Source: Cyanophora paradoxa CCMP329
Taxonomy: Eukaryota; Plantae; Glaucophyta
DNA length: 64,000 nucleotides
Direction: 5' to 3'
Assembly (NCBI GenBank): GCA_004431415.1
Contig: QPMI01000098.1
Location: forward strand, 1-64,000
In this document: one piece after another, positions 7,321 through 55,525 of the stretch
How positions within the stretch are numbered: position 1 is the stretch's first letter
Layout: each line of letters begins with the position of its first letter
The notes under the pieces: model-generated
Told to the model about the DNA's origin: nothing
What the model saw: the letters and a program-made list of their open reading frames with translations, nothing else
Database searches by the model: none
Made by a program: the position numbers and the translations under genes

Positions 7321-10300
7321 ATGGCGACGGTGCTCTGGTTTCGCAAGGGACTCCGCCTGCACGACAATCCGGCTCTCCTGCAAGCACTCAAGCCAGCGCC
7401 GCAGCACCTGTATCCGATCTTCATTCTCGATCCGTGGTGAGCGAGCGCGAGAGCGAGCGATCCGTGCTGCTGGGCTCCGCGTGCATGTGCTGCCGGGTCC
7501 ACGTGCTCAGCCTCAAGGCTCTGGAGGCGCACCGAAGCACGCCGCTGCCTGACGCGAGGGGCGCAGGTTCATCAAGAGCGGGCGGGTCGGCGTGAATCGG
7601 TGCGCGCGCGCGTGCCGAGCGCACCTCACAAGCGCCGGCGCCGACGAGCGCGCGCGCGCGCTCGCGCGACTCTCCGCAGCATCCGCTTCCTTCTTGAGAG
7701 CCTCGCGGACCTCGACGCGAACCTCAGGCGCCTCGGGTGCGCCCGCTTCCCATCCGGCGCCCGCTCGAGCTGACCGCCGGTCCCTTGCGCACGCCCGTCG
7801 CGCGCTGACGCCGACGCCGATCCGCGGCGCAGATCGCGCCTCATCGTGCTGCAGGGGAGCCCGATCCCCGTCCTCTCCCGCGCTTTCACGGACTGGGGCG
7901 TCGCCCGCCTCGCCTTCGAGAGCGACACCGAACCCTGTAGCCCCCCGTCCCCTCGGCATGTACCCGCCCGCGCGCCCTAACCCCCGCGCGTCGCGCAGAT
8001 GCCAAGGAGCGGGACGCCAGGGTACGGGAGATCGCGGCGACCGCGGGGGTAGAGGTCGTCAGCCCATCGGGCCACACGCTGTACCCCCCTGAGAAGCTGC
8101 TGGACTACTGCGGGGGTAAGCCGCCTCTGACGATGCAGGGATTCCAGAAGGCACGGCGTACCCCCCTCGCCCTGCTCCCCGCTCGCCCCGCGGCCGCTTA
8201 TTCCCCCCTCAGCTGCTGGCGACCGTCGGGCACCCCGCCAAGCCACAGGATGCCCCGCGATCCGTTCCCCCTCCCGCCCCCGGCAAGGCGCGCGCCCCCG
8301 CCTCTCCTATCCCATCCACGTTCACGTACCCCCCCAGGTCGCGGACGGGGAGCACGGTGTACCCTCCCTCGCGGAGCTGGGGCTCTCGCTGGAAGCGGAG
8401 GGCGCGGCGCCGGTATCCCGCTTCCCGGGGGGGGAGACCGAGGCCCTCCGCAGAATGGACGCGTTTCTCTCCAACAAGCGTGTACCCCCCTTCGACCGAA
8501 GCGACGTAGCCCTCTGACCCCGAGGCGCAGGCAGCGCGCGGCGACGTTCGAGAAGCCAAAGACCGTACCCACCGAGTTCGAGTGCGTCGTATCCCGCTCG
8601 AAACAACTCCGTACCCCTCACACGTCCCGGCAGCCCCCCCGCGACCACAGTTCTGAGCCCGCACCTCAAGGTTCCCCGCAGTACCCCTGCATGTCTGCAC
8701 CCCGGACATCTCAAATACCCCGTACCCCCAGTTCGGCTGCCTGTCCCCCCGGACTTTCTACTGGCGCCTCCAGGACCTGTACCGGTCCGCGTCGCCCCCC
8801 CCCTTCTTTCGAGTACCCCCACGCACGTCCCTCCGGGCAGGGAGGTGCCGCGGCACAGCTCGCCCCCGGTCTCCCTCGAGGGCCAGGTCCCCCCCCCCCC
8901 CCCCTCGAGCCCCTCCTACAGACGCCTGCGGGGAGCCCTGTACCCCTCTCTCTCTCCTCTGACCGGGGCGCCGCCTGTGCAGCTGCTGTGGCGGGAGTTC
9001 TTCCACCTGGTGGGGCACGCGACGCCCAACTTCGACAGGATGGCCGGCAACCCCGTCTGCAGGCCCGCCCTCGCGCCCCGCCCTCCCTCCCTCGAGCCCC
9101 GCTCGCGTGGCTAGCGATATCGATGGGGTCTCATTTCTCGACCCGACTCGAGCCGCCGCCTTTCGACGCCCCGCCGCCTTCCTTAGGCATCTCCGCCCAG
9201 GATGGCCTCTCGCTCCCCGCCGGGCCGGGCCGGGCGCGGGGTGCCCGGCCCCTCTGACGTCCCGCCGCAGGCAGATCCCGTGGGGGGACAACGCGGAGTA
9301 TCTCAAGGCGTGGGAGGAGGGCCGCACGGGGTACCCCTGGATCGACGCCGTCATGCGCCAGCTCCGCTCCGAGGGCTGGATGGCGCGCATGCCCCCGACC
9401 CCGCTGCCGCCGCCCGCCCCCGCCAGCTCACGGTAGCAAGGCCTGAGATGGGCCTGCGCGCAGCACCACCTGGCGCGGCACGCGGTCGCCTGCTTCCTCA
9501 CCCGGTGCCCCCGCCCCGCCCGCCCCGACCCGACCCGAGCCGGCGCCCTCTATCCCCCTCGCCTGCTCATCTGATCCCGACCCGGGACCGCCGCAGGGGT
9601 GACCTGTGGGTCAGCTGGGAGAAGGGGGTGCGCGCTCCAGCCCCGCTCCCCCCTCCACCCCCCCCCCCCCCCCCTCCCCCCCTCTGAGCCGGCGGCCAGG
9701 CGGAGGTCTTCGACCGGTTGCTGCTGGACGCCGACTGGCACCTCAACAACGGCAACTGGATGTGGCTCTCCTGCAGGCGCGGCGCCCGCGCAGCCCCCGG
9801 CCTGGGCCCTCCGACCCTCCGCCCCTCCGTCTGATCTGAGGCGGGACGCGCAGCGCGTTCTTCCACCAGTTCTTCCGCGTGTACAGCCCCATCAGCTTCG
9901 CCAAGAAGGGCGACCCCGACGGCAAGTTCATCCGCCGCTACGGTCCGCCCCCCAGCCAGCCAGTACTAGTGAGCTCGAGACGGCGGCTGACTCAGGACTG
10001 ATCATGAGCGATCGCGATCAGTGCCGGAGCTGGCGCGCTTCCCCGCGCAGTACATCTACGAGCCCTGGAGCGCGCCCCTCGCCGCCCAGCAAAAGCGCGC
10101 CTCTCTCCCCTTCTCTCCGCCCCCTACGCTTAAGATTACGTATACGCCGCCCGCCGTCGCCTCCGGTCCTGACGCCGCCGCCGCCCTCGCCTCCCCTCCC
10201 ACCCCCCGCGCGCAGGGCGGGGTGCGTGGTGGGGAAGGACTACCCCCGCCCCATCGTGGACCACGCCGCCGCCTCCAAGCGCAACATGGGGCGCATGAAG

Positions 10301-10728
10301 GCCGGCCCCCGCCCCGCCCCGCCCCGCCCTCTGCTTGAGCTTAGCTTCGAGCGCCTTGGCCTCGCTGGCGCGGCCGGCGCCGCTCCTTTCCGGAAGCTGA
10401 TCGTTCTCCCCGCAGGACGCGTTCGCTGCGGCGCGGGCGGCGGCCGGAGGCGGCGGCGGCGGCGGCGGGGTGCGCTGGCTCTCTCTCTAGATCTCCGGAT
10501 CCGCGGGGCCGCTGCCCTGAATCTTGTCTCACGGCCCGCCAGGATCCGGAGGAGGAGGAGGGCGGGGAGTGGGAGGGAGAGGGGGCCGGCAAGGGGAAGG
10601 GGAAGGGCAAGCGGGGGGCGCCGGCGCCGGCGCGGGAGGCCAAGCTTAAGCCCGCGGCCGGGCCCGGGACCTCGCGCGCGAGCTCCGGATCCACCTCGAA
10701 TTCGAAGAAGAAGCTTAAGAAGGCCTAG
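7321..10728 (+). CDS. UVR3: (6-4) DNA photolyase / animal-like cryptochrome, about 21 exons
   Basis: [16 protein letters not shown]; FPGGETEAL; FEKPKT; [14 protein letters not shown]; [15 protein letters not shown]; [15 protein letters not shown]; [20 protein letters not shown] (the HHLARH motif of 6-4 photolyases); [16 protein letters not shown]; YIYEPW; DYPRPIVDH; basic C-terminal tail ending KKKLKKA*. Confidence 0.93.
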
Positions 10729-11283
10729 AAGGCCTAGCGATCACGTGGGCTTCTCAATACGATGAGCCATGCACAAATATCACTGTATTAATATTATTAT
10801 TTCAGCATCTTGTTTTTGGTGAATTACCGGCCACGTGCACAGCCTCTATATATCATAGTATATGATAATCTACTAGTACTAGGCTACTCTAGCACTGTGC
10901 ACTGCGGCACGTGGGGGCGTATACGTATACGTATACAGGCAAGCTTAATTATATAAATTAAGGTGCATATCAGACTTGAGTACCTTAGTTGCTTGCAACC
11001 AAGGACCCAAGTCTTCTATGCATATACTAGCAGACCGCCCCCGGCCCTGTGCAAGTGCGGCAAGTGCGGGCCGCGCGCGGAGGTGCAAGGGGGGGTACTG
11101 GTACACATTGCAGGGTACTTGGGGGGAAGGCGGGGGGCGCAGGGGAGGGGGGCGGAGGGGGCAGCTAGAGAAGCGAGGCGGGCGGCCGGGCGAGGCGGGC
11201 GGGGTGGCGAGGCGGGTAGGTGGGGTGGCGACGCTGGCGGCGGCGCGCGGCGGCGGGCGGGAAAGCGGGATCCGGAGGAGAGA

Positions 11284-11765
11284 CAGGTGGCACCGGGCCC
11301 TGCGCGTAGCCTGCGCATGCGCAGAACCGAGGCGTCAGCTCGCCCCGGACAGCATCCATGCAGGGGCGGGGCCCAGCGGGGGCGGCCGGGCCATGGCCAG
11401 GTGCGCAGCAGCAGCGGCGGAGCGAACCTGGAGTCGACGAAGCTGATCATGAAGCAGCCGGCAGGGCGGCGGGCGAAGAAGCGGGCGGAGCGGCAGGTGG
11501 CGCCGGGCCCTGCGCGTAGCCTGCGTGCGCAGGGCCGAGGCGTCAGCTCGCCCCGGACAGCGGCCGTGCACGTGCGGGGGCGGGGCCCAGCGGGGGCGGC
11601 CGGGTCAGGTGCGAAGCAGCAGCGGCGGGGCGAACCTGGAGTCGACGAAGCTGAAGCAGCCGGGCCGGCGGGGCGGCGGGCGAGGAAGCGGGCGGAGCGG
11701 CAGGTGGCGCCGGGCCCTGCGCGTAGCCTGCGTGCGCAGGGCCGAGGCGTCAGCTCGCCCCGGAC
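11284..11765. repeat. Diverged tandem repeat, about 207-210 bp unit, about 2.3 copies
   Basis: CAGGTGGC[A/G]CCGGGCCCTGCGCGTAGCCTGCG...GAGGCGTCAGCTCGCCCCGGAC recurs at 11284, 11494 and 11701. Confidence 0.85.
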
Positions 11766-11801: not shown

Positions 11802-11948
11802 GGCTCGAGCCAGCCCTCCCCCCCCGGCCGCGGGGCTCGAGCCGCCGGCTGGAGCGAGCCGCCCTTTTCCACGAGCCAGCTCGAGCCGGGAAAAAGGTCG
11901 GCTCGAGCCGGCTTGGCTCGAGCCGAGCCGGCTCGAGCCGCAGCTCTA
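11802..11948 (-). mobile_element. Probable single terminus of a hAT-like DNA transposon with GGCTCGAGCC subterminal repeats
   Basis: The minus strand reads TAGAGCTG followed by a dense cluster of CTCGAGCC/GAGCCGAGCC motifs, as in plant hAT ends. No matching second terminus was found. Confidence 0.4.
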
Positions 11949-12743
11949 GCGAGGCGTCGGAGGTTGGATCGGATCGGATGATTCGGATCTGCCGATCCTA
12001 TCGAGCTCGATCGGCGGGTCACGGTCCTAGGAGGATGAAAAAACGTTTGGGGGTACTACGGTACACGGCTAGCAGGTGGCATTGCGCAGAGTGCGCAGCG
12101 GCCGGAGCGCTATCATAGTATAGTAGCTAGCCTAGCGCCACATCGATTCGGATTCGGATTCTTCCCGGCGGATTCGTTGCGACTCTAGCGACTCAGTAGC
12201 GAGTCGAGTCGTCCGACGGTCGCAGTTCAACGATCTCCTTCAAGGCTCTTAGGCCAGAGGTGCGCATGCGCCGTCCTACGGCCCGACGGTCCCTCTTTCT
12301 TTGAGAGACGTCCATCGACTTCAGGCTCGTATAGTATACGTTTAACCGCTGTGCGCTCGCCTTAGCCACGCGCGCACATCTAGCCGGCCAGGTTTTATGA
12401 TCTAGCCGGCCGACTCTGCGAAGCTCTGATCGGATGTAGGCCTAGGCTATATGTGCCTATGCATATGGCCAGCGACCTCGAGCTCGCCATAATGATCATA
12501 CATCAAGATTATGATCATGGCCTTTAAGTTGCGTATGGCATGCCATGATGGCAGCGCTAACCGGCCGGAGCGACGCGCCGCAGGCCCTAGCCCATGCCAG
12601 CCATACCATAGCTATAGTTAGATCTCTTTATAATTATGATTTAACGGCTGCAGAAATTGGGCGGTCGGTCGCGATTCGTCTGATGATTCCGCATGTGCAA
12701 GCGCAGCCGCACGCGTTAACCCCAAAACACACCGCAAACGATC

Positions 12744-14263
12744 ATGGCGAGTATCCCGACCGGCACATGCTACTCGGTGCGCTCAGCGGCGCCGTCGCTT
12801 GTGCTTGCCGCGCACGGCGGCCGCGGGCAGTTGCGTACTCGAGCTCGATGATAAAACTAATTGCCATCGCATTCGGCCAGGATCGAGGCTGCGTGACCTC
12901 GAAAGACACAGGCGGCGCTGTTGAAAAATCTGTGTACGTGAGAGCCCCATGCATACATCTGAGAGCTCGCCTTGAATCGTCCTTGTCCGCGCAATCAGCT
13001 GCTTCAACAACACCAACAAGGGTCACTCGTGGAAAGCGGATCACAGGGACGCCCAGTGTGAGAATCAGGTCATCGGCACCTGCCATACAGAGTTGGACTG
13101 CTCATTTAACTCCATCACGGCCTCTTCGATGACCGAGCTCAACCGCGTCATGTCCGCCCCCCTCGGCCCGATATCGATCGCTCGAACATATATTTATAAT
13201 TATTTTCGCGGTGTGCTCGAGCAGGTGCTTCGACCAGTATGCTGGCAAGTCGTGGAAGCCGATTTATAGCACCACATGCGAGAATGTGAGCCTCATTAAT
13301 ATTGCAATTGATAGTATTGTCTAGATGTCCCGCAAATCGCAAATCGATATCCCGTGGCCAGATTAAGGGCACGTGCTACGACACTATTGGTTGCACCGGC
13401 AATGCTGTTTTGGCGTCCAACGCGACCTTCACTGCCGGCTCCTTCGATTCCGGCTTCACGTGCGTGTCTCGTTTCGATTGATCATGATATCCGCTTAGCG
13501 CTCGCCGCTGAGCGCTTTAGCACCTGCGCAGTTGCTTCAACCTACAAGGCAAGTCGTTCCAGCCGACCGGCGCGACCACATGCACGAACGTAAGCTTAAG
13601 TCCAATCATAACGTTAATCGCCATCGATGTTGTCATGTTCATGGAAAATATCGACACTGGCGACCGCGACCAGGTCAACGGCACGTGTTATCTCAGCCCT
13701 GGGTGCACCGGAAGCACAACCACCGCTGCCACCGCCTACGGGAGCACTACCAAGTGCGCTTCGAATCTCGAATAATCTGAAGCCGACGCTAATTATTATC
13801 CTTCGTAAAATGGAGCATTTTTTCCTTCAAGGCTTGAGCTGCGTTCCACCGCAGGTGTAGCACTGCTGGTGGAAAGTCGTACATGTCGTCTGCGGCTGGC
13901 AGTACATGCACCGAGGTGAGCATGGACACGGCCGCTGCCGCCGCCGCCGCGCGCCACGGGCGGGCGCGCGCCGGCGATATCGGTTTCACAAGCTCCTGGG
14001 CGGCTGTGCATGTGCACGCGCACGCGTACGCGTCTGACGCGGGGAGACGCAGCTGCAGCTAGACAGCGAGGTGCAGCTCCTGGAGGAGGACCTCGAGCTG
14101 GACGCCGACCTGGCCGCGGCCGACGCCGACGACGAGTTTGCGGTGCGCCGGCTCCGGCGCCCGCCCCCAAGTCGACATCACGCGCGCGCCCCGGATCACG
14201 CCGGCGCAGCTTCTGGACGCCCAAGCCGAGCTCGAGGGCGCAATCGAGCCGGAGGCAATTTAA
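12744..14263 (+). CDS. Unrecognised 246-aa protein: four tandem four-cysteine repeats plus an acidic C-terminal tail (10 exons)
   Basis: Exons 12744-12776, 12881-12933, 12999-13151, 13225-13285, 13362-13459, 13532-13589, 13674-13753, 13855-13915, 14053-14142 and 14210-14263 splice in frame through GT-AG introns (741 nt). Repeat consensus: GTC[YH]xxxxC-x14-22-C-x4-6-G[KH]S[WFY]-x7-8-C[ET][NE]. Confidence 0.85.
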
Positions 14264-15946
14264 TTTGAACGCTTGGATGCATTATCAAATTTAAATTGTG
14301 AGCTTAATTAAGCCAGCGCCTCGCCGCATGTAATTTCCGGTTGCAGGTTTCCGAAATACTATCTAAATAGTGTGAAACAACGTGGCTCAATAAGGAATTT
14401 CGAAGGGGCAGAGTGGCGCGATCAAGCTCGAGCTTAGGGGCTCCAACCGATGATCATGAGCCCGGGTGGAGATATACACTGCCAGGCCCTGATCATGATC
14501 ATGATCATGAGGCTGCCAGGCTGGCCATGGGCTGAGGGGGAGAAATTAAAGCTGGCGGAGACAGCTGGGCCGGGGTATATATATCTGGAGGAAGCCTGCC
14601 TGCAGCTGTCGATGATCCCGAAGGGCTATGCGGGCAGCGACGAAGGTAAAAGCGGTTGGCTATAGCTAACTACTCGCCACAGCGTGGAAGGCCTGATCAT
14701 GATCATGAGGGTCTAGATCTGCCAGGGCGACTCGGCGAAATCGAGCGGCCTAGCTGATCATGAGCAGGTATGTGGAGCGAGTGGTCGTGCCCTACGGGGG
14801 AGGGGGGGGATGGGGGCCGGGGGGCACATTGTACATGTTGGGGCGCTGTGGGGTGATGGGGGCACGGCGCGATGGGCGCCGGAGGGTGGCGTGCACGTGG
14901 GGCGGGGCGCACAGGGCACTGCAGCTGGGCGGCGACTGGGAGCGGGAAGCTTAAGCGCGGTGCCGGTGCGCCGAGGGCGGCCGAAGGGCGGCTGGGGGCG
15001 GGGGCCGGGCGACGAGCGCCGGGGCGCTGGGTCGGTCGACGGGGGCTGGCGCGGGCGGGGGGCCGGGCCGGGTTCAGGCGAGCGAGCTGCAAGGCTTTAA
15101 TTTGTCTGCCTCGGGCCGCGAATTCGAAGAGCTCCGCTCCAGGGGGAGTCCGAGCGCCAGCGCGCTCGTCTCGGCACTGGCCCCGGGAGGGGGGGGGGGG
15201 GGGGGGGAGGGGGGGAGGGGGGGGGAGGGGGGGGGGGCGGTGGGCGTCCTCGCGCCCTCTCCTTGGACGAGAAGGGGGCCTAGGCTCGACGCTCAACGGG
15301 GGGTGGGGGAGGGGCCGGGGGGGCCCGGGGGGGGGGGGGGGGACGGGCGCGGGTCGCTAAGAAATTCAGCGGTGTACGTCTGTGCACGTGTCACACGCTC
15401 TGTGAACGCGCGGGAGGGAGGGGGTGCCGCGCCTGCCGCGCCGTGCTGCCGGCCCGCCGCCCGCCGAGCCGCGCCGTACTATAGCTATAGCTAGCGCTAG
15501 TTGTCCGCTGCGCGCCTCCCGGGGAGTCCGCCACATCGTCTCCCTGATCAGATTTTTGCTCATGACTAAATCTGCGGCTCATGATCAGACGCTGAGAAAG
15601 CCTTGAAGCGCTTCAGCAAGATCTCTATAGAGCGCACCGCAGCGTGCGGGGCACTGCGTCATATGCACAGTGCATGCGCAGCACGTCAGCGGCAGCTGGT
15701 GAGTGGTAGCCCGCAACTCGCTTGCTGCTCGCCTCTCGCCTGTACTCTGATGGTCAACGAGCCCGGCCGCGTTCGCTTGGCCGACTGTGCAGCCGACCTG
15801 TTCGCCTAGTCGCCGAGTCGACGCGGCGACGCGCCGACGCGGCGACGGCGCGACGCGGCCGACGCGGCGACGCCACGGATCCGGGTACAGGTTTCGAGAA
15901 GAATAGCTGGGGGGTCCATCGCCGTCCATGTCGGCCTAGGCCGGCG

Positions 15947-19031
<3,085 letters not shown>

Positions 19032-28932: not shown

Positions 28933-30631
28933 ATGGGCTCAACGTGCTCTAGGTCTCGTGAGCCGGTCGAGCTTGGCCAACTCGGCGCGCGGCGCTCCTC
29001 GTCCTCCACCGAGAAGCACAGGAGGACGAAAACCGACAGCAGCCTCGACTACCTTCTGGCGTCGATTGAAGAGCTCGAGGTGCTTCTCGAGCGCCAACGT
29101 ACGCAGAGCGTGACGTGACGTGCCTTTCCAGGCCGCGCTGAGCGCGAAGGAGAAAGTCCTCGGTGAGGACCATGAGCTGGTCGGTGACGCGCTCACGCAG
29201 CTTGCGTGGCGGAAGCAGACGAGCGGGGACTACGCGGTTAGCGCGCGCGCGCGCGAGACGCCCTCGCCGAGACCGTGCTTGCGTTCAAAGCTTAAGTGAG
29301 CTTATAATGGAGCTTTGGCAGGCCGCGGTGGCGCTCTTCAAGAGGAGCCTCGCGATCCGCGAGAAGACCGTCGGCCCTGAGCGAGAGATCACGATGCGGA
29401 CGCGGGTCAGCGCGCGCGATCCGATCTGCATGCGGAGGCGCCTCGCCCTGGTAACGGTCGATATTGAACCGTCGAATCGCCCGCAGCACGAGATGGGGCG
29501 GCTGCTGGTCGTCATGGGCGAGTACGGCGAGGCGATCTCGCTCCTGAGGCGGGTGCAGCGCTTCTACGAGGAGCTGAAGGGCCCGGAGCACTGGGACTCG
29601 GCCGTCGCGGCGCACGACATCGCGCGGGCGTACCACGCCAGCGGCAACCTCGATGCCGCCCTGCCCCTCTACCAGGCGCCCGCGCCGCTTGGCCTCGACA
29701 TCGAATTCGAATCCTGAGCCCGGTCGCAGCGGGCGCTGGGGGCGAGCGAGCGGATCGGGGGCCCCGCCGTCGTGAACCTCGCTATGAGCCTCTACTGGAT
29801 TGGGCGGCTGCACCTCGAGCGGGGCGACTACGCGGCCGCCCGCCCGCTGCTCGAGGTGCCCCTCTCGGCCGCGCTTGCCCTCGCGACCGCGATCGCCGGC
29901 CCGCCTCTGAGGCGCGGCCGCCCGCGCGCGTGCAGCGGGCGCTCAGCATTCGAGACGAGAGCCTCCGCAGGCACCCCGTCGTGGCCCAGGCGAGCAAGTC
30001 CAGCTTTTGATCCGGGCCGGGCCGTGCCTCGCGCTCGGGCGCGCCCTGAACGCGCGGGGACGCCGGCGCAGAGCGAGGCGACCCTGGCAGTGCTCCTGGC
30101 CGCCCGCGGCCACGCCGGCGAGGCGCAGCAGATGCTCGAGGTACCCCCTCTACCTTCTTGCCCGTACCCCCTACCCCCCCACCCCCAAACCCGTACCCCC
30201 GCAGGACGCTGTGGCGACTCAGGAGGCCTGCCTAGGGCCCCAGCACCCCGACGTGGCCGAGACCCTGTACTACCTGGGGTACGCTGTTGTTTTTCGGCGA
30301 GGGTACGGGTCTGCCTGTGCCGGGCTGAGCTGACCCCGCCCGCCCCGCAGGGAGCTGCACGCGCGCTGCGGCCGGCACGAGCAGGCGCGGCCGCTCCTCC
30401 AGGTGCCCTGTACCCCCCATGGCCACCCGCCCCGCTGCGCGGCTGCTGACGTACCCCCAGAGGGCGCTGGAGATCCGGAGGGCGCGGCTGGGCGCCGCGC
30501 ACCCGGGGACGCGGCTGGCCTCGGATGCGGTGGCCTCCCTGCCGGACCCGCCGGCCGCCGAGGGCGGGCGCCGCTCCCTCGCCGGCGCCCTCCGCGCCTC
30601 CCTCGACGGCCTCCGCCGCGGCGAGGCGTAG
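28933..30631 (+). CDS. Kinesin-light-chain-like TPR repeat protein with predicted N-myristoylation/palmitoylation
   Basis: MGSTCS start. Repeats LSAKEKVLGEDHELV, FKRSLAIREKTVGPE, YEELKGPEHWDSAVAAHDIA, CLGPQHPDVAETLYYLG, RALEIRRARLGAAHPGT. Confidence 0.8.
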
Positions 30632-31131
30632 CCGCTGAGCTGGCCGAGCTCAGCGCTCGCATTCCGTGACCTCCAGCTCGGTTCGGTTCCTTGGGGACTC
30701 AGCGAGTTTTACTGCTGGGAATATTAATGTATACGTAGCTATAGTTTTCAATGTGGGTAGATCTCAAACCCTTATGTAAGTACTAGCCTAGTAGTTCTAA
30801 TTACTAATTATAAGTTACTACGTTACTGATTGGATTTACTATCATAGTACTCTAGTTCTAGCCTAGTAGTATGGGCACGTAGAGTCTGTCCGGGTCTGTC
30901 CATGAAGGACGCATTTGTAGCCAATATCTTCAATGATCATGAGTTCCGGGATTGCAGTTGGCTCGGTTCCGAGTCTGTCGACGTCCGGGTCTGTATGCGA
31001 TCATGAAGGGCGCACTGGCGGCATTTTTATACAGTGTACCAGTACTATGTACAGTGTCCGGTGCCCTTCACACGAAGAGCGCGCATTTGGCTGTGGCTGG
31101 GCCTGAGGGCTAGGAGCCGGCCGCGGGCCGC

Positions 31132-32999
31132 CTACCGCCCCGCCTTCCCCTTGCCCTGCTTCAGGGCGGGCGGGGGCTTGCCGGATGGACCCCCCTTCTT
31201 GGCCCCCTTGCCCTTCGCGGCGGGCGCGAGGAGCGCCACGAGGTCCTGCGGGGTACACGTCTGCGCGGCGGGCCGGGGTACTGGTCGGATGGGAATCGCC
31301 CACCTGCACCGCGGCCTCCGCGAGTCCCTTGACGTGCGCGACGACGTCCGCGGGGCGCTCGGGCTGCGCTCATGATCAGGTGAGCCGGCGGCGCCCTGCA
31401 CTCAGGTGAGCGGGGGGTCAGGCGGGACCTTGTTGCCGCCGAACTCGCGCCACCACCACTCGCCCTCGCGCTCGGGGTCCGCGAACAGCACCTCCATGCG
31501 CCACTGCGCGCCGGCTCAGAGCTCGGCCCGGCTCGGCTGCGCGGGCGGGGTACAGGGGGCGGGGCGCGCGCCTCTTCCGCGAAGTCCCGCCGCAGCTCCC
31601 GAAGCTCGTCCGCCGCCTCCTCCCTGCGCGGCAGCGCAGCCCGCCGCATGCTGAGGGGGGCCAGAGAGCAGGCGGGGGCGGGCCGGGGCGGGCCGGGGCG
31701 GGCGGACCGCTTGCGCTCGGAGGCGCCCGCCTCGCGCAGCCTGGCGCGGACCGTCTCCTCCGCGTCCGCCCAGCAGCGGTGGCAGCAGACCTGCTCCAGT
31801 ACCTGCGCGCGGCCGGCCTGCGCTCAGCGCGGGGAGGGCGGGAGGGCGCCCCGCCCGCCCCCCCGCTCGCCTCCTCGACCGGCCGTCCAACGTGTGGGCC
31901 CTGCGGGGGAGGCTCGGGCGGCCCGGGGATGGGCCGGGAAGGGGTACGGACCAGCTCGACCACGTCCTCGTCCGTCAGCTCGTCGTCGGGGGGGAGGGTG
32001 AAACCCTTGCCCGCCAGCGCCGCGCGCAACGAGGCGAGCCTGCGCGGGGCGTCGGGGGCCGAAGGACGGGGCGGCGGGGGTGCAGGAAGGGGCGAGGGCG
32101 CGCCACTCCGGGTCCGCGCAGAGGGGCCGCTCCTCGGCGTCGGGCGCGGGAGGGGCCAGGCGCCGGGCGAGCCAGGAGCGCGAGACGGCGAGGCGGATGG
32201 GGAGGAACCGGGCGGCCATCAGCGCGCGGGGCTTGGCCGACTGCGGCGCGTCCTGCGCGGGAGCTCGGCGGCCGCCGGGGGGGCGGGGCTGGAGGCGGGG
32301 GCGTGCACCTCCGCCTCCTCCGCATCCCCGCCGTCGCCCTCGCCCTGGCCTTCCGCTCCGCCGCCCGGCCGCCGCACTTGCACCTCCTCCTCGAACCGCC
32401 GCACCGTCGCGACGCGCATGCGCAGCGACCACTCGAAGCAGCTCGTCCACACGTCGCTCCCCGCCGACTGCAGCGACAGCGAGCGCTCGGGGAGCTCCCC
32501 GCGCGCGTCCGCGACCGGCGCTTCCTCGTCTTCCCGCGGCTGCGGTTCCACGAGCTCGCTCTCGCTGTCATCGGCGCTCTTCTCCTCCTCCTCGCCGCCC
32601 TTCTTGCGCTTGGCCTTCGCAGCCGCCGCCTTCCCGTGCTGCGGAAGGCGCGGCCGTCAGCGCCGTGTACGCCAGCGTCCGCAGAGTCGTTCAGTGCACC
32701 TTCTTCGGCCGGCGCAGCTCGAGGGTCACGCTGGGCCCGTTCTCAACCTCCCAGAGCTTGTGTCGCGCCGCGTCGACGATGAACGCCGGGACCTCATCGC
32801 TACCGCGTACGTCGCGGGCCTGCGGCTGGAACACGAACACGTCGTGCTCGACGGATGCGAGCGTGTAGTCGATCGCCCATGGCAGGCGCCCTTCGTTCTC
32901 GCCGAACTCCTCGGTCGAGTCGACAGCGGCGCGCACGACCAGGTCGCCCGCGCGCAGCTGCTGCTCCCAATCACCCGGCGAGCGCTCGCGCTTCGGCAT
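31132..32999 (-). CDS. Hypothetical protein (multi-exon)
   Basis: Spliceable exons with typical codon usage (MPKRERSPGDWEQQLRAG..., ...VWTSCFEWSLRMRV..., ...KGFTLPPDDELTDEDVVEL..., ...KQGKGKAGR*). No family recognised. Confidence 0.6.
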
Positions 33000-33358
33000 C
33001 GCTGCTGGCGCAGGCTGGAGAATTCGAATTCCGGCCGCCTCAGGTATTTAGGCTTGTACCCAACTTGATTATTAAACATTGTACCCTAGATACAATTAGA
33101 ATTAATCCATTTCGCTGGTTGAATAAACCATATATACATATTCGTCGATCACGCAAGATTTGCCGTTGCAATTGCGCAATATAATATATGCATTTCTTTG
33201 GAAACTTATTAATTAGACCCTATAAGTTAAATTCCGAAAGCCCGAAATTATATATGCACAGAATTATGCTCACGCCGGCGCCGCCTGCCATGGCCGGTTT
33301 GGGTCCCTTAGCTTGCTTGCCGCGCGCGCGCTCCCAAGCATGCATGCGCATGCGCAGC

Positions 33359-33769
33359 CAGGGCTGTCAGCCGGAATATTCCAGCCTGGAACGTTCCCGG
33401 AATATTAGAAAATTTTGGGAAAATTTTCGCGTCCCGTTTGCAGGGGGAAAATTTTAGGAAATTGAATATAATTTAATGATTATTTTATTCATTTTCATCC
33501 CTTTTCTGCGCCCCCTCCCCCCCTTCTGACCCCACCACGGGCCTTGCATTTCCGTCTCCAAGCTCCAGAAGGCTGTATACTGTCTCTCAGAATGCTTGTT
33601 GTGATGTTATCTTAGTGCTTCGCAGCTTTGAAAGGGCGTCTGCGGTGCGCAGCGCACGGTATTGAGAATTTTCCAGGATTTTGTATGGTGGAATATTCCG
33701 GGAACGTTCCCGGAATATTCCTCAAAATTTTCTGGTCCATTTTGGGGGGGTAAAATTTTGACAGCCCTG
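33359..33769. mobile_element. Non-autonomous hAT-superfamily MITE (411 bp)
   Basis: Perfect 11-bp TIRs CAGGGCTGTCA...TGACAGCCCTG. Perfect 8-bp TSD TGCGCAGC at 33351-33358 and 33770-33777. AT-rich interior with palindromic GGAATATTCC/GGAACGTTCC/AAAATTTT subterminal motifs at both ends. Confidence 0.92.
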
Positions 33770-34069
33770 TGCGCAGCTCCCTGTGCGCTTAGCTTGGCGC
33801 CGGCGCGAGTACTACCTTTAGTCCCTCAACCGTGGCAACGCACGGCGCATCTAGATTTAGCTGCAGCTGCAGCCCGCAGATGCGTTTCTTGCAGCTCCCG
33901 GTTCCGTGAGTCCAGAGCGCGCTTCCCGAGCTGGGTCGGAGTGCGAGTGACTGCCGTCTGTCGGCGTCCGCGCGCATGGCGCCGCAGCAAGACCGCATAA
34001 AGCTTTAGGCGGCCGCGCACATGCGACGAACACAGCCGCAGCTTCATTCATAGGGGAGCTCTGCCAGAA

Positions 34070-43377: not shown

Positions 43378-43512
43378 GAGATCGGCCTTCGCATCCCCGC
43401 GCTGGACCGCCTGCGCGCCGCGTTGGAGGCCGGCCCCCGCCCCCAGGGCCAGGGCCCGGGCCCAGGCCCCGCCGGCCCCGCGCCCCGCACCTTCGTCTCC
43501 ATGTGGGTCTGA
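34070..43512 (+). CDS. Soluble adenylyl cyclase (ADCY10)-like protein: two degenerate class III cyclase domains, STAND P-loop NTPase, helical/TPR-like C-terminus
   Basis: C1: GAVLMVD, HGLDLLELHGGA, LLYAGDA...GEIILSPEA. C2: FGGYVAPLASDDR, LWFGI, AERAVRAA, VFWGAVGPACRRSFALVGDAVALAARLMESA. Walker A LEGEAGIGKSRLLAE; Walker B VALLVEDADRLDSQTW; LPLEPLE; AAGLPLYI; YSFSHALVKEAVYESL; ends FVSMWV*. Confidence 0.78.
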
Positions 43513-44041
43513 GGGACCGATTCCGCACGCGGCCCCGCGCGCGCCAGTCATTGTAAGTAGGGTAGAGATACTCAGCGACTATGAAAGAACAAGATGCCAA
43601 CAAGAGGCGCGCGTTTCGGAATTCGAATTCGAAGCTTAAAGGCGAACTTGAAGAGAAGGCCAGGCGAGTTTTCGAAGGGCTTCGAGCTGACGTACACAGT
43701 CACGTACACGTGCACGTGCGCGGTCTGCTTCACTGATCATGAGTCAAGGCGTGCTGCTCGGAATTCGACGTCGAAGCATACGCGTAGCCACCGAATTCGA
43801 ATCATTCGAATTCGAAGCCTTGAAGGATCAGACCTCGATCCAGGTTGGCAAAAAGCATTGAATTTGAAGGCATGCACAACAAGACTGTAGATGTTGGACT
43901 ATTACTAGGACTGCTTGCGCGCGATCAGCTGAGCCCCCGCGCGAAACAGGAGAATTTCGGAATAAGTTAGCTACATGTACATATGTAGGCAAGGGAAAAA
44001 ACAATTCTATCCTGGCATAATTTTGACACAGGCTTCGTAAT

Positions 44042-47000
44042 TCATCGACTGATCGCTGGAAACGAGCTCGAGAGCGGATCCGCACGAGCTGGAGCAGGAC
44101 TAGCTATAGGGGGTCCGAAGGAGCCCGGCGGGCGGGGCCGGGAGCGGAGGGGCGGGCCCGTCTCGGCCCGAGGGTGTCCCGTTGACGTCGACGTCTCGTG
44201 AGGCGAATCGGGCTCGCAGGCAAGAATGGGGGGCGTGGAGCATCCGGAGGCGTGGGAGACGTTGGCTCGCCCCGAGCGCGCATCGACGCTGAGGCCGAGG
44301 GTCGAGAGGGGCGAGTCGCTGCGTTGATCAGGGGGAGTCGACTGACTAGGCCCATGGCCAGGGGACCCGGAACCCCCGCCTAACGGGGCCCGGGACGATA
44401 GGTCTTCCCGCAGGATGGGGGCGGCCGGCGACCTGCAAGGCGCTCGGATCGACATCGAGCCGCGCGGAGAGCGGGGTACGGGAATCGCGCGCACTGGCCC
44501 GTGGCCCGACCCGTGCTCGGGCTCGCGAGGCCTCTGGCGGTGGGGCTGATCATGAAGGCGGTCGCGCCGGCCGCGGGCAGCGGGGCGCCGGCGGCGATGG
44601 CGATCGCGAGGCGCAGCGTCGCGGCGACCGCGGCCTCGCGGGCGCCGGCGGCCAGCGGCGGGAGCGGCGGCGGCGGAGGGATCGGGAAAGGGAGAGGCGC
44701 CAGCGGGGGCGCTGGAGCCGGGCTCAAGCGTAAGGGGCTCGCTATGTACATCGGCTGCTGCATCAGGTGGGGCGGCACGCCCGGGATAGGGGGAGGGGCG
44801 GCTGCAGCGATCGCGAGGGCGGACGATAGGGCGCTGGATGAGGAGGAGCGGAGGGGAGCGACCGGGGCCGGCGGAGGCACGGCTGCGAAGCTCGCGTTCA
44901 GCGGGACGAGCAGAGGGGGCGCCAGTCCCAGGGCCGAGCTGCCGGCGGGAGAGCGCGGGAGGGCGGAGAGGAGGGCGCTGCTCCCCGCGGGCGGAGGCAG
45001 GGGCGGCTCGGCGGAGCCGGCGGGCGCGCGGGGAGCCGGGGTCGGCGGGGCGCGGGGAGGGGTGCCCCACCGCTGGAAGCTCTGGGAGCGGGAGAGGCCG
45101 CGGACGACGCGGGCGGGGGGGAAGTCCCCCAGCGTCGAGAGCGAGCGGGGGAGCCCGGGGGTCCGGGGGGGATCCGGCAGGGCCGCGGAGGAGGGGAGCG
45201 GCGCCGGGGCCGGCCGCGGCGCCGCAGCAGATCTAGAGTCGGTGGCGAGAGGGCTCTGGGGCGGGGGCGCGGAGCGCGATCGCGAGAGCTGCAGGCCGAC
45301 GCCGGCGCCCGAGTCCCCCTCCTCCTCCTCCTCCTCCTCGTGCGCGTTGGAGGGGCGCGCAAGGCCCGACGAGCGCGCCTGGCGCCGCAGCTCCTGCGAC
45401 GGGGCCGCGATCGGAGTCGGGGTCGGCTGCGGAGAGGCGCGCGGGCGCGCGGGCGGCGGGCGCAGGCGGCGGGCGCACGGAGAAGAAGCCCTCCCCCAAG
45501 GCGACCGTCTTGGACTTGAAGGGGCGGGAGAGGGGCCGCGCGCCCGCCCCCTCGCCCTCGTCCAGCTGGAAGGAGACCGAGCCCCTGAGCGCGCCCGGAC
45601 GCGCCGCCTGCGCATGTTCCGAGCCGGGGCCCGGGCCGAAGGAGACCCCAAAGCCGCCAAAGCGGACGGTCGGCGTCGGCGCCGGCGTCGGCGCCGGCGT
45701 CGGATCGGTCGGAGGGCGCAGCTGCAGGGAGCGGGACGGGGAGCGGGGTGCCGGGCCCGCCCTGCAGGCGTCGCGGCTAAGGGAGGAACGCACGTGCGCG
45801 CTGTCCCTCAGCTGCGCGAGGTTCGGCCCGCGCCGACTCTGCGCGCGCGCGCCGTCACGCCTCAGAAGGCGCGCGCTTCGTAAGGGGAAGTACGTATATG
45901 TGCGCGCGAACCGCCGTAGGGGAGGAGCTGGCGGGTGGGGAATCTGGGCCGGCGGCCGCGGGGGGCGGGGCGGGGCCCTCCCTCCCCTGGTCGCCGTCGG
46001 GGGCCGGGGGCTGCAGCTGGTCGAGGAGCGGGGTGGACGTGGGCCGCCGGACCATGCTCCGGCTCCGCAGGGGGCCCGGCGCCCGCTGCGTCACGTCGCC
46101 GGAGGCCTCGAGCTCCAGCCGCCTCCGCGCAGTCTGCCCTCCGCCCTGCCCTCGGCGTGAGCTTTGAGGAGGAGGAGGGGAAGGGGGGAAGGGGGGGAAG
46201 GGGGGGGAGGGGGGGAGGGGGGGGGACGCAGAAGGAAGGCCGGATCTCTGGAGAGCTCGAGCTCGCAGTCTCGAGAAGGGCACCTGGGAGCTTGAGAGCT
46301 AGAGAGCTAGAGAGCTACAGAGCTAGGATCTCTAGAGAGAGCTCGGGGACTTCGAGAAGGATCCGGAATCTCTTTCGGCTTGCGGCACGGCTGCATCTCT
46401 AGATCTAGATCTAGAGAGCTCGAGCTCGCAGTCTCGAGAAGGGCACCTGGGAGCTTGAGAGCTAGAGAGCTAGAGAGCTACAGAGCTAGGATCTCTAGAG
46501 AGAGCTCGGGGACTTCGAGAAGGATCCGGAATCTCTTTCGGCTTGCGGCACGGCTGCATCTCTAGATCTAGATCTAGAGAGCTCGAGCTCGCAGTCTCGA
46601 GAAGGGCACCTGCTCTAGACCTCCGGATCCGCCGCGCGTCGACGGCCTCTCGACCGCTCTCGGAGTCGGAGAGGCCCCTCCGAGGCCCAGGCCCGCGGCT
46701 TCTGGATCCAGATCCGTTTTGGGGGCCCGCTCCCCTCGGATCTCCAGGCCTAGGGCCTGCGGACCGCCTCAGCGGCGCGCGGGGGGGAAGAGCTTCGGTC
46801 CAGATCGGGGGAACGGTCGCCCACCCGGCGGGCGAGCTCCCCGACGGCGTCCAGCTCGCGATCGCACTCGCGTTCTCTGCTCTCGCCAGCGCCGTGCCCA
46901 GCGGTCTGGAGAGGCCGCGGTACGGTTGAGCTTCCGGCGAGCGCGGCGGCGGAGGCTCCACGTATACGTACAGGCGCCGTGAAAGGGAGGAGGGCCGCGC

Positions 47001-49357
47001 GGGCCGCCTCCGAGAGGACCCGCCCCCCGTGCTCCCCTGGAGACCATATCAGAACTCGAAAAGCCGTCTGACAGGGGAGGAGGTCCAGGTCCAGGGGCGG
47101 GGCGGCGGACCGCTGGTGGCGAGGGAGGCGAGCGCGAGGGCGGCCCCGCGGCGCGCGTCGCGGCCCCCCGCGGCGCAGCCGTCGACGAGGGCGGGGCCGA
47201 GGTGCGCGATCTTGCCGAGCGAGGCGGCTGCGCGCGAGCTCTTGCGGTCAGCGAGACCTCACACTTGAGATGAGAGCGCACGGTGGTTGCCCGCGATGCG
47301 GCCGAGCGCGAGGAGCGCGAACGCCCGCCGCTCCCCGTCGGGCTCCTGTACATGCGCGCCGGCGCCGACCATGAGCTCGAGCGATCGTTCTCCGGCTCGA
47401 GCATTACGAGGCCAGACCTGGAGGGACGGCTCGAGGGCTCGGAGGACGCCCGCGCCGAAGAGCTCCCGGCACGCCTCTCCTGGAAGTTCGAAGATCAAAT
47501 TTGAGGTTTGAAATTCTTTGAAGGCTCGGGGGCTCCGATCAAATCATGAGCAAGGAACTCGAAGGCCCAAGACTATAGCTATCCGGGAGGCGCACGGGAG
47601 GCGGCGAGGTTGCTCGCGATCTCGAGGCCCAGGAGCTGCGGGAAGGGTCTGAGTTCAAAGGCGAGATCTAGAGACAAGCTCAAGTACGGATTTAATCTGC
47701 TCTGTAACTGTGGCCCACCGATAGCTCGTCGTGGGGATGAAGGCACAACTCGACGACAACCTTAGGCCCCGTCACCGCTCAGTCGCAATTGTTCGGCGAT
47801 CTTCGAGTCTCAATCAGGATAGAAACGCGCGCCTTGGCCATTCCCGCCTGGAGCAGCGCGTCGAACGTCTCAGCGAACTGCGACACGCGAGCGTTCAGAG
47901 GTCGTGACCATCGATGTCCGATCGCGAGCGGAGAATTTCGAAAGGCCGGGGCGTATGCGCACGCGGGAGCAGTTGCGGAGACAGGCGGCGGGCCCGACGC
48001 GGAACTCGTTGTTCGAAAAGGGGTTCGAGAGGGCTTTCACGAGCGCCTGCGGGCGCCCGCGGCCGGCCGCGTTCAAAATTAAAATTTAAGCGAAGGGGGC
48101 ATGATCATGATCAGGGTCCGGCGCCGCGCGGACCCCTCCAAAGCACTCCTGTTGAACCCACTTGACGGCAACGGGCCCTGCACCCTCGAGCTCGGTGTTG
48201 GCATGGAAACGGGGGTACGGAATTGCGAAGGGGGGTACTCGCGCACGGCTCGCGGAGGCGGCCTGCAGCAGGGCGAAGAGGGCGCCCTGTACCCCCAGGT
48301 CGCTCTGGTCGACCTGTACCCCGTTCTCTAGTTAGCTACCGGGCGAGGAAAGCTGCGCTCATGATCATGTCTAGAGCGAGTGTCTCGCGATCGGAATCGG
48401 GATCGGACCGCGAGCACGAGGAGGGCGTCGAGGGAGGAGGCGTCCGCCAGCGCAGAGGCCGCCGGCGCTGCGCGGGGGCCGGGCCGGGGCCGGGCCGGGG
48501 CCGGGCCGGGGCCGATCGCGGTCAGGAGGGACGGCGGAAGCGCACGTGCACGGGACCCCGACCCACCGCAGTCCAGGCAGACTGAGCCCGGCGCGGTGTG
48601 TGAGGAGGGGGCGCAAGAGCTGCCGGGCCGGGGCGCATGCGCATGCGCACTGGCGGCGAGGGCGCGGAGGGCGAGGCGGCGGGAGGCGGCGAAGCGGGCC
48701 CGCTGGGCGACGGAGACCAGGCGGGGGACGGCACCCAGGCGGACGAGCTCCATGCTCAAGAAAGCTGCCGGGGAGGATTACAGTTGCGATCAGCGGCGGC
48801 CATAGAAAGCTCGCGATCGCGCGCGTTGAGAGCTCGAGATCTAGATCGAGGCGCGCACGGTTGCAGGCGGCGTCCGCCAGCCTTTGGAGGGCCGTCGCCT
48901 GGTGCTCGACGGAGGGCGCCCCCTCTGCCCCCCGCAGGGCCTCCGCCAGCTCTCGGTACCCGCCCTCCGCGTCCGCCTTGCTTGCTGAGAGGGAGGCCAG
49001 GAGGGGCGGCCAGGGGTCCGCGGCCGCCCCGGCGGGCCGGCGGCGGGGCCCGATGACCCTGAAGTAGCGACCAGGTGTACGTGTTCTCTGGGACGAGACC
49101 CAGAGCGCGAGGGCTGCGAGGGAGCGGCGGAGCCTTAACTTGCGCCAGAACTGCTGCAGGGTCCTCGCCGCCGCCGCTCTCATCGCGCCGTTCGTCGACC
49201 CGTTTGCGTACGCCCCCGCCGCAGCGCTGCTTGGCAGGAACATACCTGCAGGCTGATCAGAGATGGCACATGACCAATACTACTGACTAGTACTGCAGGA
49301 TGTGAAGCGAGAGCGTCGCGCACTGCTCAATGTGACTGGCGAGCGATCGGAGGCCAT
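44042..49357 (-). CDS. IQ-motif/armadillo-like repeat protein with a long Pro/Ser-rich disordered C-terminus
   Basis: IQ-like AAARTLQQFWRKLRLRR. ARM-like helices ELVRLGAVPRLVSVA, ELFGAGVLRALEPSL, AFALLALGRIAG, HLGPALVD...AALALASLA. Last exon ends ...FPAISR* at 44042. The start is uncertain. Confidence 0.55.
46251..46612. repeat. Perfect 163-bp tandem duplication (about 2.2 copies) inside the IQ/ARM gene
   Basis: Identical units at 46284-46446 and 46447-46609, plus a partial third copy. Confidence 0.92.
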
Positions 49358-53151: not shown

Positions 53152-53828
53152 TTTCATTGCTACTCTATCGATCGCTAGGATCGTTCATGTTACGTCCAGA
53201 TTTTTTGAGGCCGACCGCGGCCGGCCGTGTACAGTATATGACTTGCAATTGAGGTTCATTGAGATATTGTACAAATGCGTGTGTCTTGCAAATGTCTGTA
53301 GCTATAGCTAGTTGAGTTATTCAATGATTGTCGATCATCGGATGTGATTCGAATTCAATGACGTCGACTCATGATCATGACTTGATCAATGAGCAATCGC
53401 GAGATGGGATCATGATCATGGCGTGGCCCGTCCGACGGCATCGACAACTGGCAAGCATCAAGCTGGGATAACTACTGACTCATGTTCATTGCATTTGCAA
53501 GCGCTACCGTAGTAAGCTGCAGGCTCACATCACAGCATTTAAATTCGAATTGCAATTGCAATTGGTGGCAGAATATCTCGATCCCTGACCTCGGCCCACG
53601 CCGGGGCTGTCGTACTCCGCTGCAGTGACAGTAGACATTAAGGCTATTCAACAGTGAACTCGCATCGAAGCATCCTCGCCACCGTGGCACGGCGCATCGC
53701 TGAGTCGCCGTGGTACGGATATCGATCCCACGGCCATAGGCATCCCGGCCACGGCCAGCCGCTTGAATGCTAATGAATGCTAATGTTAATTTCAAGAGCG
53801 AGAGCGAAATTCCAAAGAAAGAAAGGGG

Positions 53829-55525
53829 CTAGAGGAGGGACGGGGGCAGGGGCAGGAAGCGCCAGGGCCAAAGGGCGAGGGCGAGCAGGAAGCCGCCGAT
53901 CATGTGCCAGAGGCAGGCCTTCTTCACGGGCTTGCTCGTCGTGCGGCCGGCGCTGAAGTCCTGTACCCCCCGCACCAGCTTCAGCGCGTACGGCGCCGCT
54001 CCGGCCACCGCCAGCAGCACGCGGGCCGGCAGCAGCCGCCCCGCGACGAGCGCCGCCGCCGCCGCGAAGAGGGGGTACACCATCGTCGGGCCGTACACGG
54101 CGCCGGCCTTGTCGAGGCCCAGGCGGACCACAGGCGTCATCTTCCCCGCCGCCTTGTCCCCCTTGACCTGCGAGAGGGGGGGGGGAGAGAGTTCGCCGGG
54201 GGTACTGGAGACGGAGAGGGGTACGGGGGGCGGGCCTGGTGGAAGTGGTGGGCGAAGATGATGGAGGTGACCATGAAGCCGACGAGGACGGAGGCGGCCG
54301 CCGCGGTCGCGCTGAACCTCCCCAGCTGCGCCGTCGACGCCGCCAGCGTCGCGAGCGGCCTGTAGCCCCCCGCAGGCACGTGAGGCCGGGGCGCCGGCGG
54401 GGGGCACGCGCCCCGCGGCGCACCCGAAGGCGAAGAAGGTCATCGGCTCGCCGATGCCCTTGTAAGAGAAGCGGAAGGGCGGGCCCTGGGGGTACCGCTC
54501 AGGAAAAGGGGTCGCGGGGGTACATGGGTACTTGTGAACCGCGGCTCACCTGGTACAGGTACCCGAAGACGACGCCGAGGGCGGCGATCTTGGCGAGGCT
54601 GCGGTTGGGCATCCGCCGGTCCGCCAGCCCCACGCACGCCGCGCCCACCGCGAGGCACGCCAGCGCCGCCGCCTGTGGCCCCCGGGGTACTTGGATGACG
54701 GGGGAAGGGGGGGGGGAGGAAGCGCGAGGGGTAGGGGCGGACCTGAACGGCGGCGGGCTTGCCGGTGAGGTTGACGAAGGAGTCGTGCTTCTCGTTGTCG
54801 ACGCCCGTCTGCGAGTCGTACACGTCGTTGCTCGTGTTCAGCCACGCCTGCGGGGAGTACGGGTTAGCATCGCTCCGGGGCCGGGCGCGGGGGGTACGCT
54901 GCGCGCCTGTAGCATGATCTCGCCGACCATGACGAGAGCGGCCTGGCTCCAGGAGAAGGCGGCGAGGGTGCCGGCCGCCGCCATGTCCCAGCGCGCCGCC
55001 GCCGTCCCGACGAGCACGGGGACCACCGCCGCGGCGTAGATCAGCGGGTTCAGCGCCGAGAACCAGTACTCCTTCTGCGCCCGCCCTCGATCGACCCGCG
55101 CCGGCGCGGCCCGCGCCCGCGGGCCCGGGCGCGGACCTTCGACGCCTTCGGGGCCGGCTCGCCCGCCCCGGCGTCCGCCGCCGAGCACCGGACAGAGAAG
55201 CTACGGCGCTGGCCGAAGCGCAGCGCCAAGGAGCCCGCCTCGGCCGCCAGGCGCGCGCCCGAGGCGAAGAACGCCGACGAGCCAGAGGCCAGCGCCGCCG
55301 GTGCTTCACCGAAGAAGCAGGACCGCCGCCCGGAGGACCGGCAATGCGTAGTGCGCGCTGCGACGAAGTTAGCTCGCGCGTCCAGGGCCGGGGAGGTTCG
55401 CGGGGCTCACTCGGCGGCGCGGGACATGCAGCTGCGGCGGTGGCGAGCGAGCGCGGCGATGGCCTAGCTGTCACGACTCCTGTGCATGCGAACGCTGGCT
55501 CCGGCCGCTGCGCTGGGCCCGCCAT
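53829..55525 (-). CDS. menA: DHNA phytyltransferase (phylloquinone biosynthesis), cyanobacterial type, with putative plastid transit peptide
   Basis: YWFSALNPLIYAAAVVPVLVG; QAWLNTSNDVYDSQTGVD (NDxxD); GYLYQGPPFRFSYKGIGEPMTFFAFG; IIFAHHFHQVKGDKAAGKMTPVVRLG. Ala/Pro/Ser/Arg-rich N-terminal extension. Confidence 0.9.

Follow-up and report, generated by a model that had tools for sequence, protein, structure and literature searches.

In a window of 64,000 nucleotides of the Cyanophora paradoxa CCMP329 genome (positions 1 to 64,000 of contig QPMI01000098.1, assembly GCA_004431415.1; all coordinates given here refer to this stretch) a gene of ten exons is located on the forward strand (12744-14263), which encodes a protein built from four tandem copies of a module containing four cysteines. 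Upstream of this gene are exons of a photolyase/cryptochrome-type gene on the forward strand (9107-9436, FAD_binding_7, E = 1.2e-15, and approximately 10208-10300, representing the C-terminal end of the domain, E = 8.7e-5) and a GC-rich tandem repeat with a 207-bp unit (11277-11765; 2.4 copies, 88% matches), which is situated just upstream of the low-GC island in which the gene is found and is followed by short CGGCTCGAGCC palindrome repeats (11899-11940). Downstream of the gene there are near-pure G tracts of 53 and 45 nt on the forward strand (15185-15347; 84% and 81% matches to a poly-G unit) and a multi-exon protein kinase gene, also on the forward strand (17240-18726; Pkinase, E = 4e-20), whose GC content at third codon positions (GC3) is 0.93-1.0 (at 17260-18500). 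No link between the four-cysteine gene and the neighbouring photolyase, kinase and repeats was found at the locus, terminal inverted repeats or transposon ends convincingly flanking the gene were not detected, and the 64-kb window did not contain any Rfam match.

Rebuilding the gene from its window coordinates yielded 741 nt of coding sequence, corresponding to 246 codons and a TAA stop codon, whose translation is free of internal stops and agrees letter for letter with the protein proposed in a preliminary description of this locus. The protein consists of a head of five residues, the four modules, and an acidic tail of 47 amino acids. Exon 1 (12744-12776) carries the start codon and encodes the first half of module 1 as far as the first cysteine, which is part of a GTCYS motif whose GTCY corresponds to the GTC[YH] of repeats 2-4. 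Exon 2 (12881-12933), which is preceded by a CAG acceptor, followed by the donor GTACGT and ends in phase 2, contributes the remaining A half of module 1 with Cys2 and the loop, and exon 3 (12999-13151) combines the B half of module 1 (Cys3 and Cys4) with the A half of module 2, the two being fused without an intron. The B half of module 2 is encoded by exon 4 (13225-13285), the A and B halves of module 3 by exons 5 (13362-13459) and 6 (13532-13589), and those of module 4 by exons 7 (13674-13753) and 8 (13855-13915). The first part of the acidic tail, which is rich in Leu, Asp, Glu and Ala, is derived from the GC-rich exon 9 (14053-14142; 70% GC), and the remainder of the tail together with the TAA stop codon from exon 10 (14210-14263).

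GT at the start and CAG at the end are common to all nine introns, whose lengths are 65-137 nt with a mean of 86.6 nt; the donor is GTGCGC in three cases, GTGAGC in two, and GTGCGT, GTACGT, GTAAGC or GTCCGC in one case each. The intron phases follow the repeats: introns 2, 3, 5 and 7 are in phase 2, each splitting the codon before Cys3 of repeats 1-4, and introns 4, 6 and 8, placed after repeats 2-4, are in phase 0. Two further phase-0 introns are found within the first half of repeat 1 (intron 1) and within the tail (intron 9), and the junction between repeats 1 and 2 is devoid of an intron and reads GAG AAT CAG GTC (13060-13071). The ten-exon structure, the GT-AG borders, the position of the phase-2 introns before the third cysteine of all four repeats, the phase-0 introns behind repeats 2, 3 and 4 and the intronless first junction had all been put forward in the preliminary description and could be reproduced without change. 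We are highly confident that the gene and its architecture are real. Splicing is needed to read module 3, as intron 5 contains four in-frame stops. Intron 6 (13590-13673; 84 nt), on the other hand, is in frame and stop-free, and its retention would insert 28 amino acids between modules 3 and 4. Retention of intron 8 (13916-14052) or intron 9 (14143-14209) is predicted to replace the acidic tail by a basic, Ala/Arg-rich end, and the nature of the C-terminus therefore hangs entirely on two splices.

The gene had been regarded as hidden, which is correct only with respect to a plain list of open reading frames. An exhaustive phmmer search with the 50 amino acids of exon 3 against 1.84 billion representative proteins returned a single match of 246 amino acids (E = 4e-30, with three matched stretches), and this protein is identical to the spliced model over its entire length. 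It is deposited in EukProt as EP00741_Cyanophora_paradoxa_P025735, where it forms a singleton cluster, and represents the gene model tig00000391_g24834.t1 of the public C. paradoxa gene set. Names of this format are used in the gene set of Price et al. 2019, which comprises 25,831 genes predicted by BRAKER1/AUGUSTUS trained on mapped RNA-seq data, and whose authors caution that the models need manual curation (PMC6704402). Genes of C. paradoxa contain on average 9.2 introns with a mean length of 86 bp in a genome with a GC content of 67.6% (PMC6704402), and with nine introns of 86.6 bp on average the four-cysteine repeat gene is typical of the genome in both intron number and intron size. It is a native, intron-rich nuclear gene of C. 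paradoxa and in its structure an ordinary resident of this genome. The gene identifier tig00000391_g24834 does not appear in the accessible portions of the supplement of Price et al. 2019 (PMC6704402), and the searchable literature contained nothing on this identifier, on the contig, or on cysteine-rich proteins of Cyanophora.

The four tandem repeats comprise 47-53 amino acids and four cysteines each, and in an alignment all 16 cysteines are in register (residues 9, 15, 30, 49, 57, 63, 81, 98, 105, 111, 134, 150, 157, 163, 180 and 197). They share the pattern GTC[YH]-x4-[GD]C, followed by 14-22 residues and C[FS]-x4-6-G[KH]S[WFY]-x7-8-C-x-[NE], so that Cys1 and Cys2 are separated by 4-5, Cys2 and Cys3 by 14-22, and Cys3 and Cys4 by 15-18 residues. 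Local alignments of every pair of repeats resulted in z scores of 3.5-11, determined with 2000 shuffles as control, and in 12-19 identities over 43-46 aligned positions. The similarity of the repeats thus exceeds chance, and the pattern is real. Each module is divided by its phase-2 intron into an A exon, encoding Cys1-x4/5-Cys2 and a loop rich in Thr, Ser and Gly, and a B exon, encoding Cys3-[FS], the G[KH]S[WFY] motif and Cys4-x-[NE]. Modules 1-3 end with C-x-N (with an additional Gln following in module 1), which coincides exactly with the exon borders in modules 2 and 3, and module 4 ends in Glu. Within the 199 amino acids of the repeat part, Thr (32), Ser (23), Gly (21), Ala (17), Cys (16) and Asn (12) are frequent, and there are only 5 Leu, 6 Ile and 7 Val. 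Cysteine accounts for 8% of the repeat residues, with neither CxC nor CxxC motifs being present, and the modules are near neutral (Lys+Arg versus Asp+Glu of 6/6, 3/5, 2/2 and 2/1 in modules 1-4). A single-sequence AlphaFold2 model reached a pLDDT of 34.6, which renders it unusable with respect to both the fold and the pairing of the cysteines.

The proposal that a four-cysteine module of about 48 amino acids has been multiplied as a two-exon unit with intron phases retained is well supported by the exon map, the repeat alignment and repeats at the DNA level. Exon 5 and the beginning of exon 7, together with their acceptors, have 71% identity in their DNA sequence, and exons 4, 6 and 8 resemble each other at the exon end and the donor, while the bodies of the introns can no longer be aligned between modules. 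The DNA similarity thus spans the exon-intron borders of modules 2-4 while intron bodies have diverged, and the exons therefore look conserved relative to the introns. The array would have grown by tandem duplication of a unit consisting of an A exon, a phase-2 intron and a B exon; this unit is bounded by phase-0 introns and yields four complete modules with no leftover. The intron between modules 1 and 2 might later have been lost, or deleted except for its last three bases. At this junction the codon CAG (13066-13068) is extra and is followed by GTCATCGGCAC, and the acceptor of module 4 is CAG followed by GTCAACGGCAC. It is thus possible that the junction codon is the remnant of an intron left by a genomic deletion, a reading for which this single codon is the evidence. 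Module 1 has in addition an extra intron of its own, and two further exons provide the acidic tail of 47 amino acids, which shows the ordinary high-GC composition.

As noted in the preliminary description, the locus is visibly lower in GC than its neighbours, with 52-58% across positions 12000-14000 versus 70-77% on either side. The respective island (12001-14750; below 60% GC in 500-nt bins) comprises the gene and its flanks and is the largest in the window. Nine other islands below 60% GC, 500-1250 bp in size, are located at 10501-11250, 30501-31250, 32751-34000, 43501-44250, 47501-48000, 53001-54000, 57501-58750, 61751-62250 and 63501-64000 (the last being cut by the window end), and judged by their size they are what would be expected for intergenic spacers. 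A motif search further revealed eight occurrences, with at most one mismatch, of the palindrome TGATCATGATCA, compared to 0.01 expected in the window; these copies are found at 14490-14507, 14694-14705, 14755-14766, 48102-48113, 53407-53418, 58075-58086 and 61938-61949. Most of them are located in or beside low-GC islands (the copy at 61938 is inside one, and that at 48102 about 100 bp beyond one), and the palindrome may represent a shared intergenic or promoter element of the C. paradoxa genome.

The repeat exons of the four-cysteine gene have a GC content of 51-62%, introns 2-7 of 43-57%, and the flanks of 54%. By codon position, GC1/GC2/GC3 is 0.38/0.59/0.72 in the repeats and 0.91/0.28/0.85 in the tail. 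The GC3 of the repeats is significantly higher than the GC content of introns 1-7 (0.72 versus 0.52; Fisher p = 9e-7), and in each exon the GC periodicity agrees with the predicted frame. This elevation of GC3 above intron GC lends some independent support to real coding sequence. In composition the gene is still an outlier: the repeats do not attain the very high GC3 of the downstream kinase gene, to which the tail exons come closer, and a GC3 so far below that of the kinase gene could point to weak expression or to a young gene. We read the low GC content as a property of the genomic compartment or as that of a young or weakly expressed gene, and not as a sign of transfer.

Related sequences were sought in several ways. 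A confident Pfam match with eukaryotic orthologues, which according to the preliminary description would speak against a novel domain, was looked for with single exons and with the whole protein, and no Pfam family was recovered at E<=10. The same applies to NCBIfam (no family at E<=10), and PHROGs provided non-significant matches only (best E = 0.035). Searches of PDB sequences remained at chance level, both with the whole protein (best E = 0.4) and with a profile of the exon pieces (best E = 0.53), the profile being built from a permuted B-A alignment bridged by intron 6, which has no stops and stays in frame. Word searches of 5.8 billion proteins with the whole protein and, separately, with residues 100-199 returned only the protein itself, and a word search with the 50 amino acids of exon 3 gave no candidate among proteins of 28-87 amino acids. 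The exhaustive exon-3 search did not reveal a second C. paradoxa protein, and tblastn with the four modules did not detect paralogues in the 64-kb window, low-GC islands included. In a scan with the single protein, which reaches close relatives only, there was no confirmed relative in viral contigs, metagenome contigs or 185,579 prokaryotic species genomes. The exhaustive search covers what can be reached with a query of 50 amino acids, and the word searches cover proteins that share exact 5-mers and fall within a length window; within this reach, the protein is an orphan. The domain had been called unrecognised, and this holds for the module, which has no sequence match in Pfam, NCBIfam or the PDB, but not for the protein, since an identical protein of 246 amino acids is already public.

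The preliminary description had noted the absence of a signal peptide, which is borne out by the hydropathy of both the N-terminus and the whole protein: no N-terminal signal peptide was found, with a mean hydropathy of -0.31 for the first 20 residues, and no hydrophobic or transmembrane segment was found across the protein, the highest hydropathy of any 15 residues being 0.88. The N-x-S/T sequons mentioned there are indeed present, three in number. At the other end, the tail of 47 amino acids contains 17 Asp+Glu, 10 Leu and 10 Ala, and no Lys or Arg at all. An in-frame TAA is located at 12717-12719, eight codons before the ATG, and there is no AG in between; exon 1 can therefore not simply be extended upstream. 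An upstream exon encoding a signal peptide, for which the preliminary description had advised a search, did not emerge in a convincing form from a scan of the upstream DNA sequence, in which no ATG exon combined a clear signal-like segment with a usable acceptor. An ATG at 12767 opens a reading frame that is that of exon 2 and continues through intron 1 (12767-12880), with a mildly hydrophobic, signal-like start. It would serve as an alternative N-terminus only if intron 1 were retained and the first ATG skipped. We disfavour this start, as the repeat alignment assigns the GTCY of module 1 to the protein, and this motif would be lost. As far as can be judged from its sequence, a secreted disulfide-rich protein is not what the present model encodes.

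Sushi/CCP, EGF-like and fibronectin type I domains are modules of about 40-60 amino acids with an even number of invariant cysteines and a conserved aromatic residue between the last two of them, and their multiplication has proceeded by exon units whose intron phases match. The Cyanophora module resembles these domains in its size, its even cysteine number, its aromatic residue and its growth by exon units, but it differs from them in the spacing of its cysteines (4-5, 14-22 and 15-18 residues), in lacking a Pfam match and in the absence of a signal peptide. A Sushi/CCP domain in particular was rejected because Cys1 and Cys2 are only 4-5 residues apart and because of the lack of a Pfam match at E<=10. 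There is also some similarity at the motif level to CVNH lectins: Thr-Cys-x-Asn comes after a Gly/Lys/Trp stretch, and the units, of about 50 amino acids and with paired cysteines, are arranged in tandem. Yet a CVNH (cyanovirin) lectin is disfavoured by a different cysteine spacing, by the lack of a Pfam CVNH match at E<=10 and by the absence of CVNH chains from both PDB searches; a ricin-type domain was dismissed as well, as no such model matched in the Pfam scan. Precursors of cysteine-rich plant peptides, such as multi-copy antimicrobial peptides and cyclotides, are comparable in their tandem equal units, the Asn at the unit ends and the acidic segment. These plant precursors possess signal peptides and spacer propeptides and usually give rise to cationic or cyclic products. 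The Cyanophora protein, in contrast, has no signal peptide, no spacers and neutral units, and shows no sequence similarity to them in Pfam or the PDB. Finally, metallothioneins and small zinc-binding modules resemble it in being cysteine-based repeats without a targeting signal; a metallothionein or zinc knuckle was rejected, as cysteines are sparse (8%) and not clustered as CxC or CxxC, and as no model matched.

The explanation of the locus as a whole that we favour, and to which we would give an even chance, is that of a native, lineage-restricted orphan gene encoding four disulfide-stabilised modules, which arose by duplication of a two-exon unit and might serve a multivalent binding or structural role. 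Each module would be a small unit held together by two disulfides, as suggested by the few residues available for a hydrophobic core and by the even, invariant number of four cysteines, and the chain of modules might serve in multivalent binding or have a structural role within an oxidising compartment, i.e. in the secretory pathway or outside the cell. This part of the explanation, disulfides and binding, is based on sequence features and is held more tentatively, at somewhat less than an even chance. An oxidising compartment is difficult to reconcile with the absence of a signal peptide, so that either the 5' end of the model would be incomplete, or export would be unconventional, or the protein would bind metal in the cytosol. 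The last of these would make it an intracellular metal-binding protein of the cytosol or nucleus, in which the four cysteines of each module hold zinc or another metal and the acidic tail is an interaction or regulatory segment. The lack of a signal peptide and of any hydrophobic segment would fit such a protein, as would the presence of exactly four invariant cysteines per module, and Cys1-x4/5-Cys2 could form a knuckle. However, the 15-18 residues between Cys3 and Cys4 appear unlike known metal knuckles, there are no CxxC, CxC or His partners, the repeats contain just 8% cysteine, the Pfam scan at E<=10 was negative for zinc fingers and metallothioneins, and the loops rich in Thr, Ser, Gly and Asn look more like those of an extracellular protein; we therefore consider metal binding unlikely. 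Less likely again is a precursor that is cut into four cysteine-rich peptides of about 48 amino acids, for example after the Asn ending modules 1-3, with the acidic tail as a propeptide. Polyproteins of cysteine-rich peptides and Asn-specific processing are known from plants, the modules are equal tandem units, C-x-N is found at the ends of modules 1-3 (at exon borders for modules 2 and 3), and the tail is strongly acidic. Such processing would, however, have to operate on a protein without a signal peptide and without spacers, dibasic sites or other basic processing sites between the modules, the near-neutral modules would not yield cationic peptides whose charge an acidic propeptide could compensate, and at the end of module 4 Glu takes the place of Asn. 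These points make a peptide precursor improbable in our view.

Two further explanations concern the status and the origin of the gene rather than the function of its product. The locus might be predicted but non-functional, or very young, in that intergenic-like low-GC DNA and a GC-rich tail were fused by chance splice sites and are expressed little or not at all. The exons are indeed near-intergenic in composition (51-62% GC versus 54% in the flanks), the protein is a singleton with no relatives in the collections searched and no targeting signal, retention of intron 8 or 9 would lead to alternative C-termini, and the authors of the gene set call for manual curation (PMC6704402). Nevertheless, the frame is open across ten exons joined by splice sites that are all canonical, GC3 in the predicted frame is well above intron GC, and every cysteine and motif residue has been kept in four diverged copies whose introns have diverged beyond alignment. 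We thus regard a non-functional or very young locus as rather unlikely, a little less probable than metal binding and a little more so than a peptide precursor. A foreign origin, which the preliminary description had entertained, would imply that a bacterium or virus was the donor of the gene, whose low GC content would then reflect the composition of this donor. The only observation in its favour is the compositional contrast with the neighbouring DNA, and nine further low-GC islands are spread over the window. Scans of viral contigs, the 185,579 prokaryotic species genomes and metagenome contigs, which reach close relatives only, and searches of protein collections did not yield a relative, PHROGs contained no significant match, and the gene has nine spliceosomal introns, typical of the host in number and length. 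Acquisition from a bacterium or virus is thus highly improbable.

Going beyond the native orphan gene that we favour, one might speculate that there is an undescribed family of disulfide-rich domains, restricted to glaucophytes, of which this module is the smallest representative. The protein would then be exported by an unseen route or with the help of an unseen 5' exon, and would either be a soluble protein with multivalent binding or be cleaved behind the Asn at the module ends to give peptides, with roles for example in defence or cell-surface recognition. We consider this extended scenario unlikely, at about the level of metal binding.

The module matches no described family; the gene model itself was already public. 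Glaucophytes are one of the three lineages with primary plastids and have been little studied at the protein level. Lacking relatives among billions of publicly available proteins, the four-cysteine module would represent a new small fold. In addition, the locus represents a clean and small case of a module array extended by duplicating a two-exon unit, with the possible loss of an intron that left its last three bases behind as a codon.
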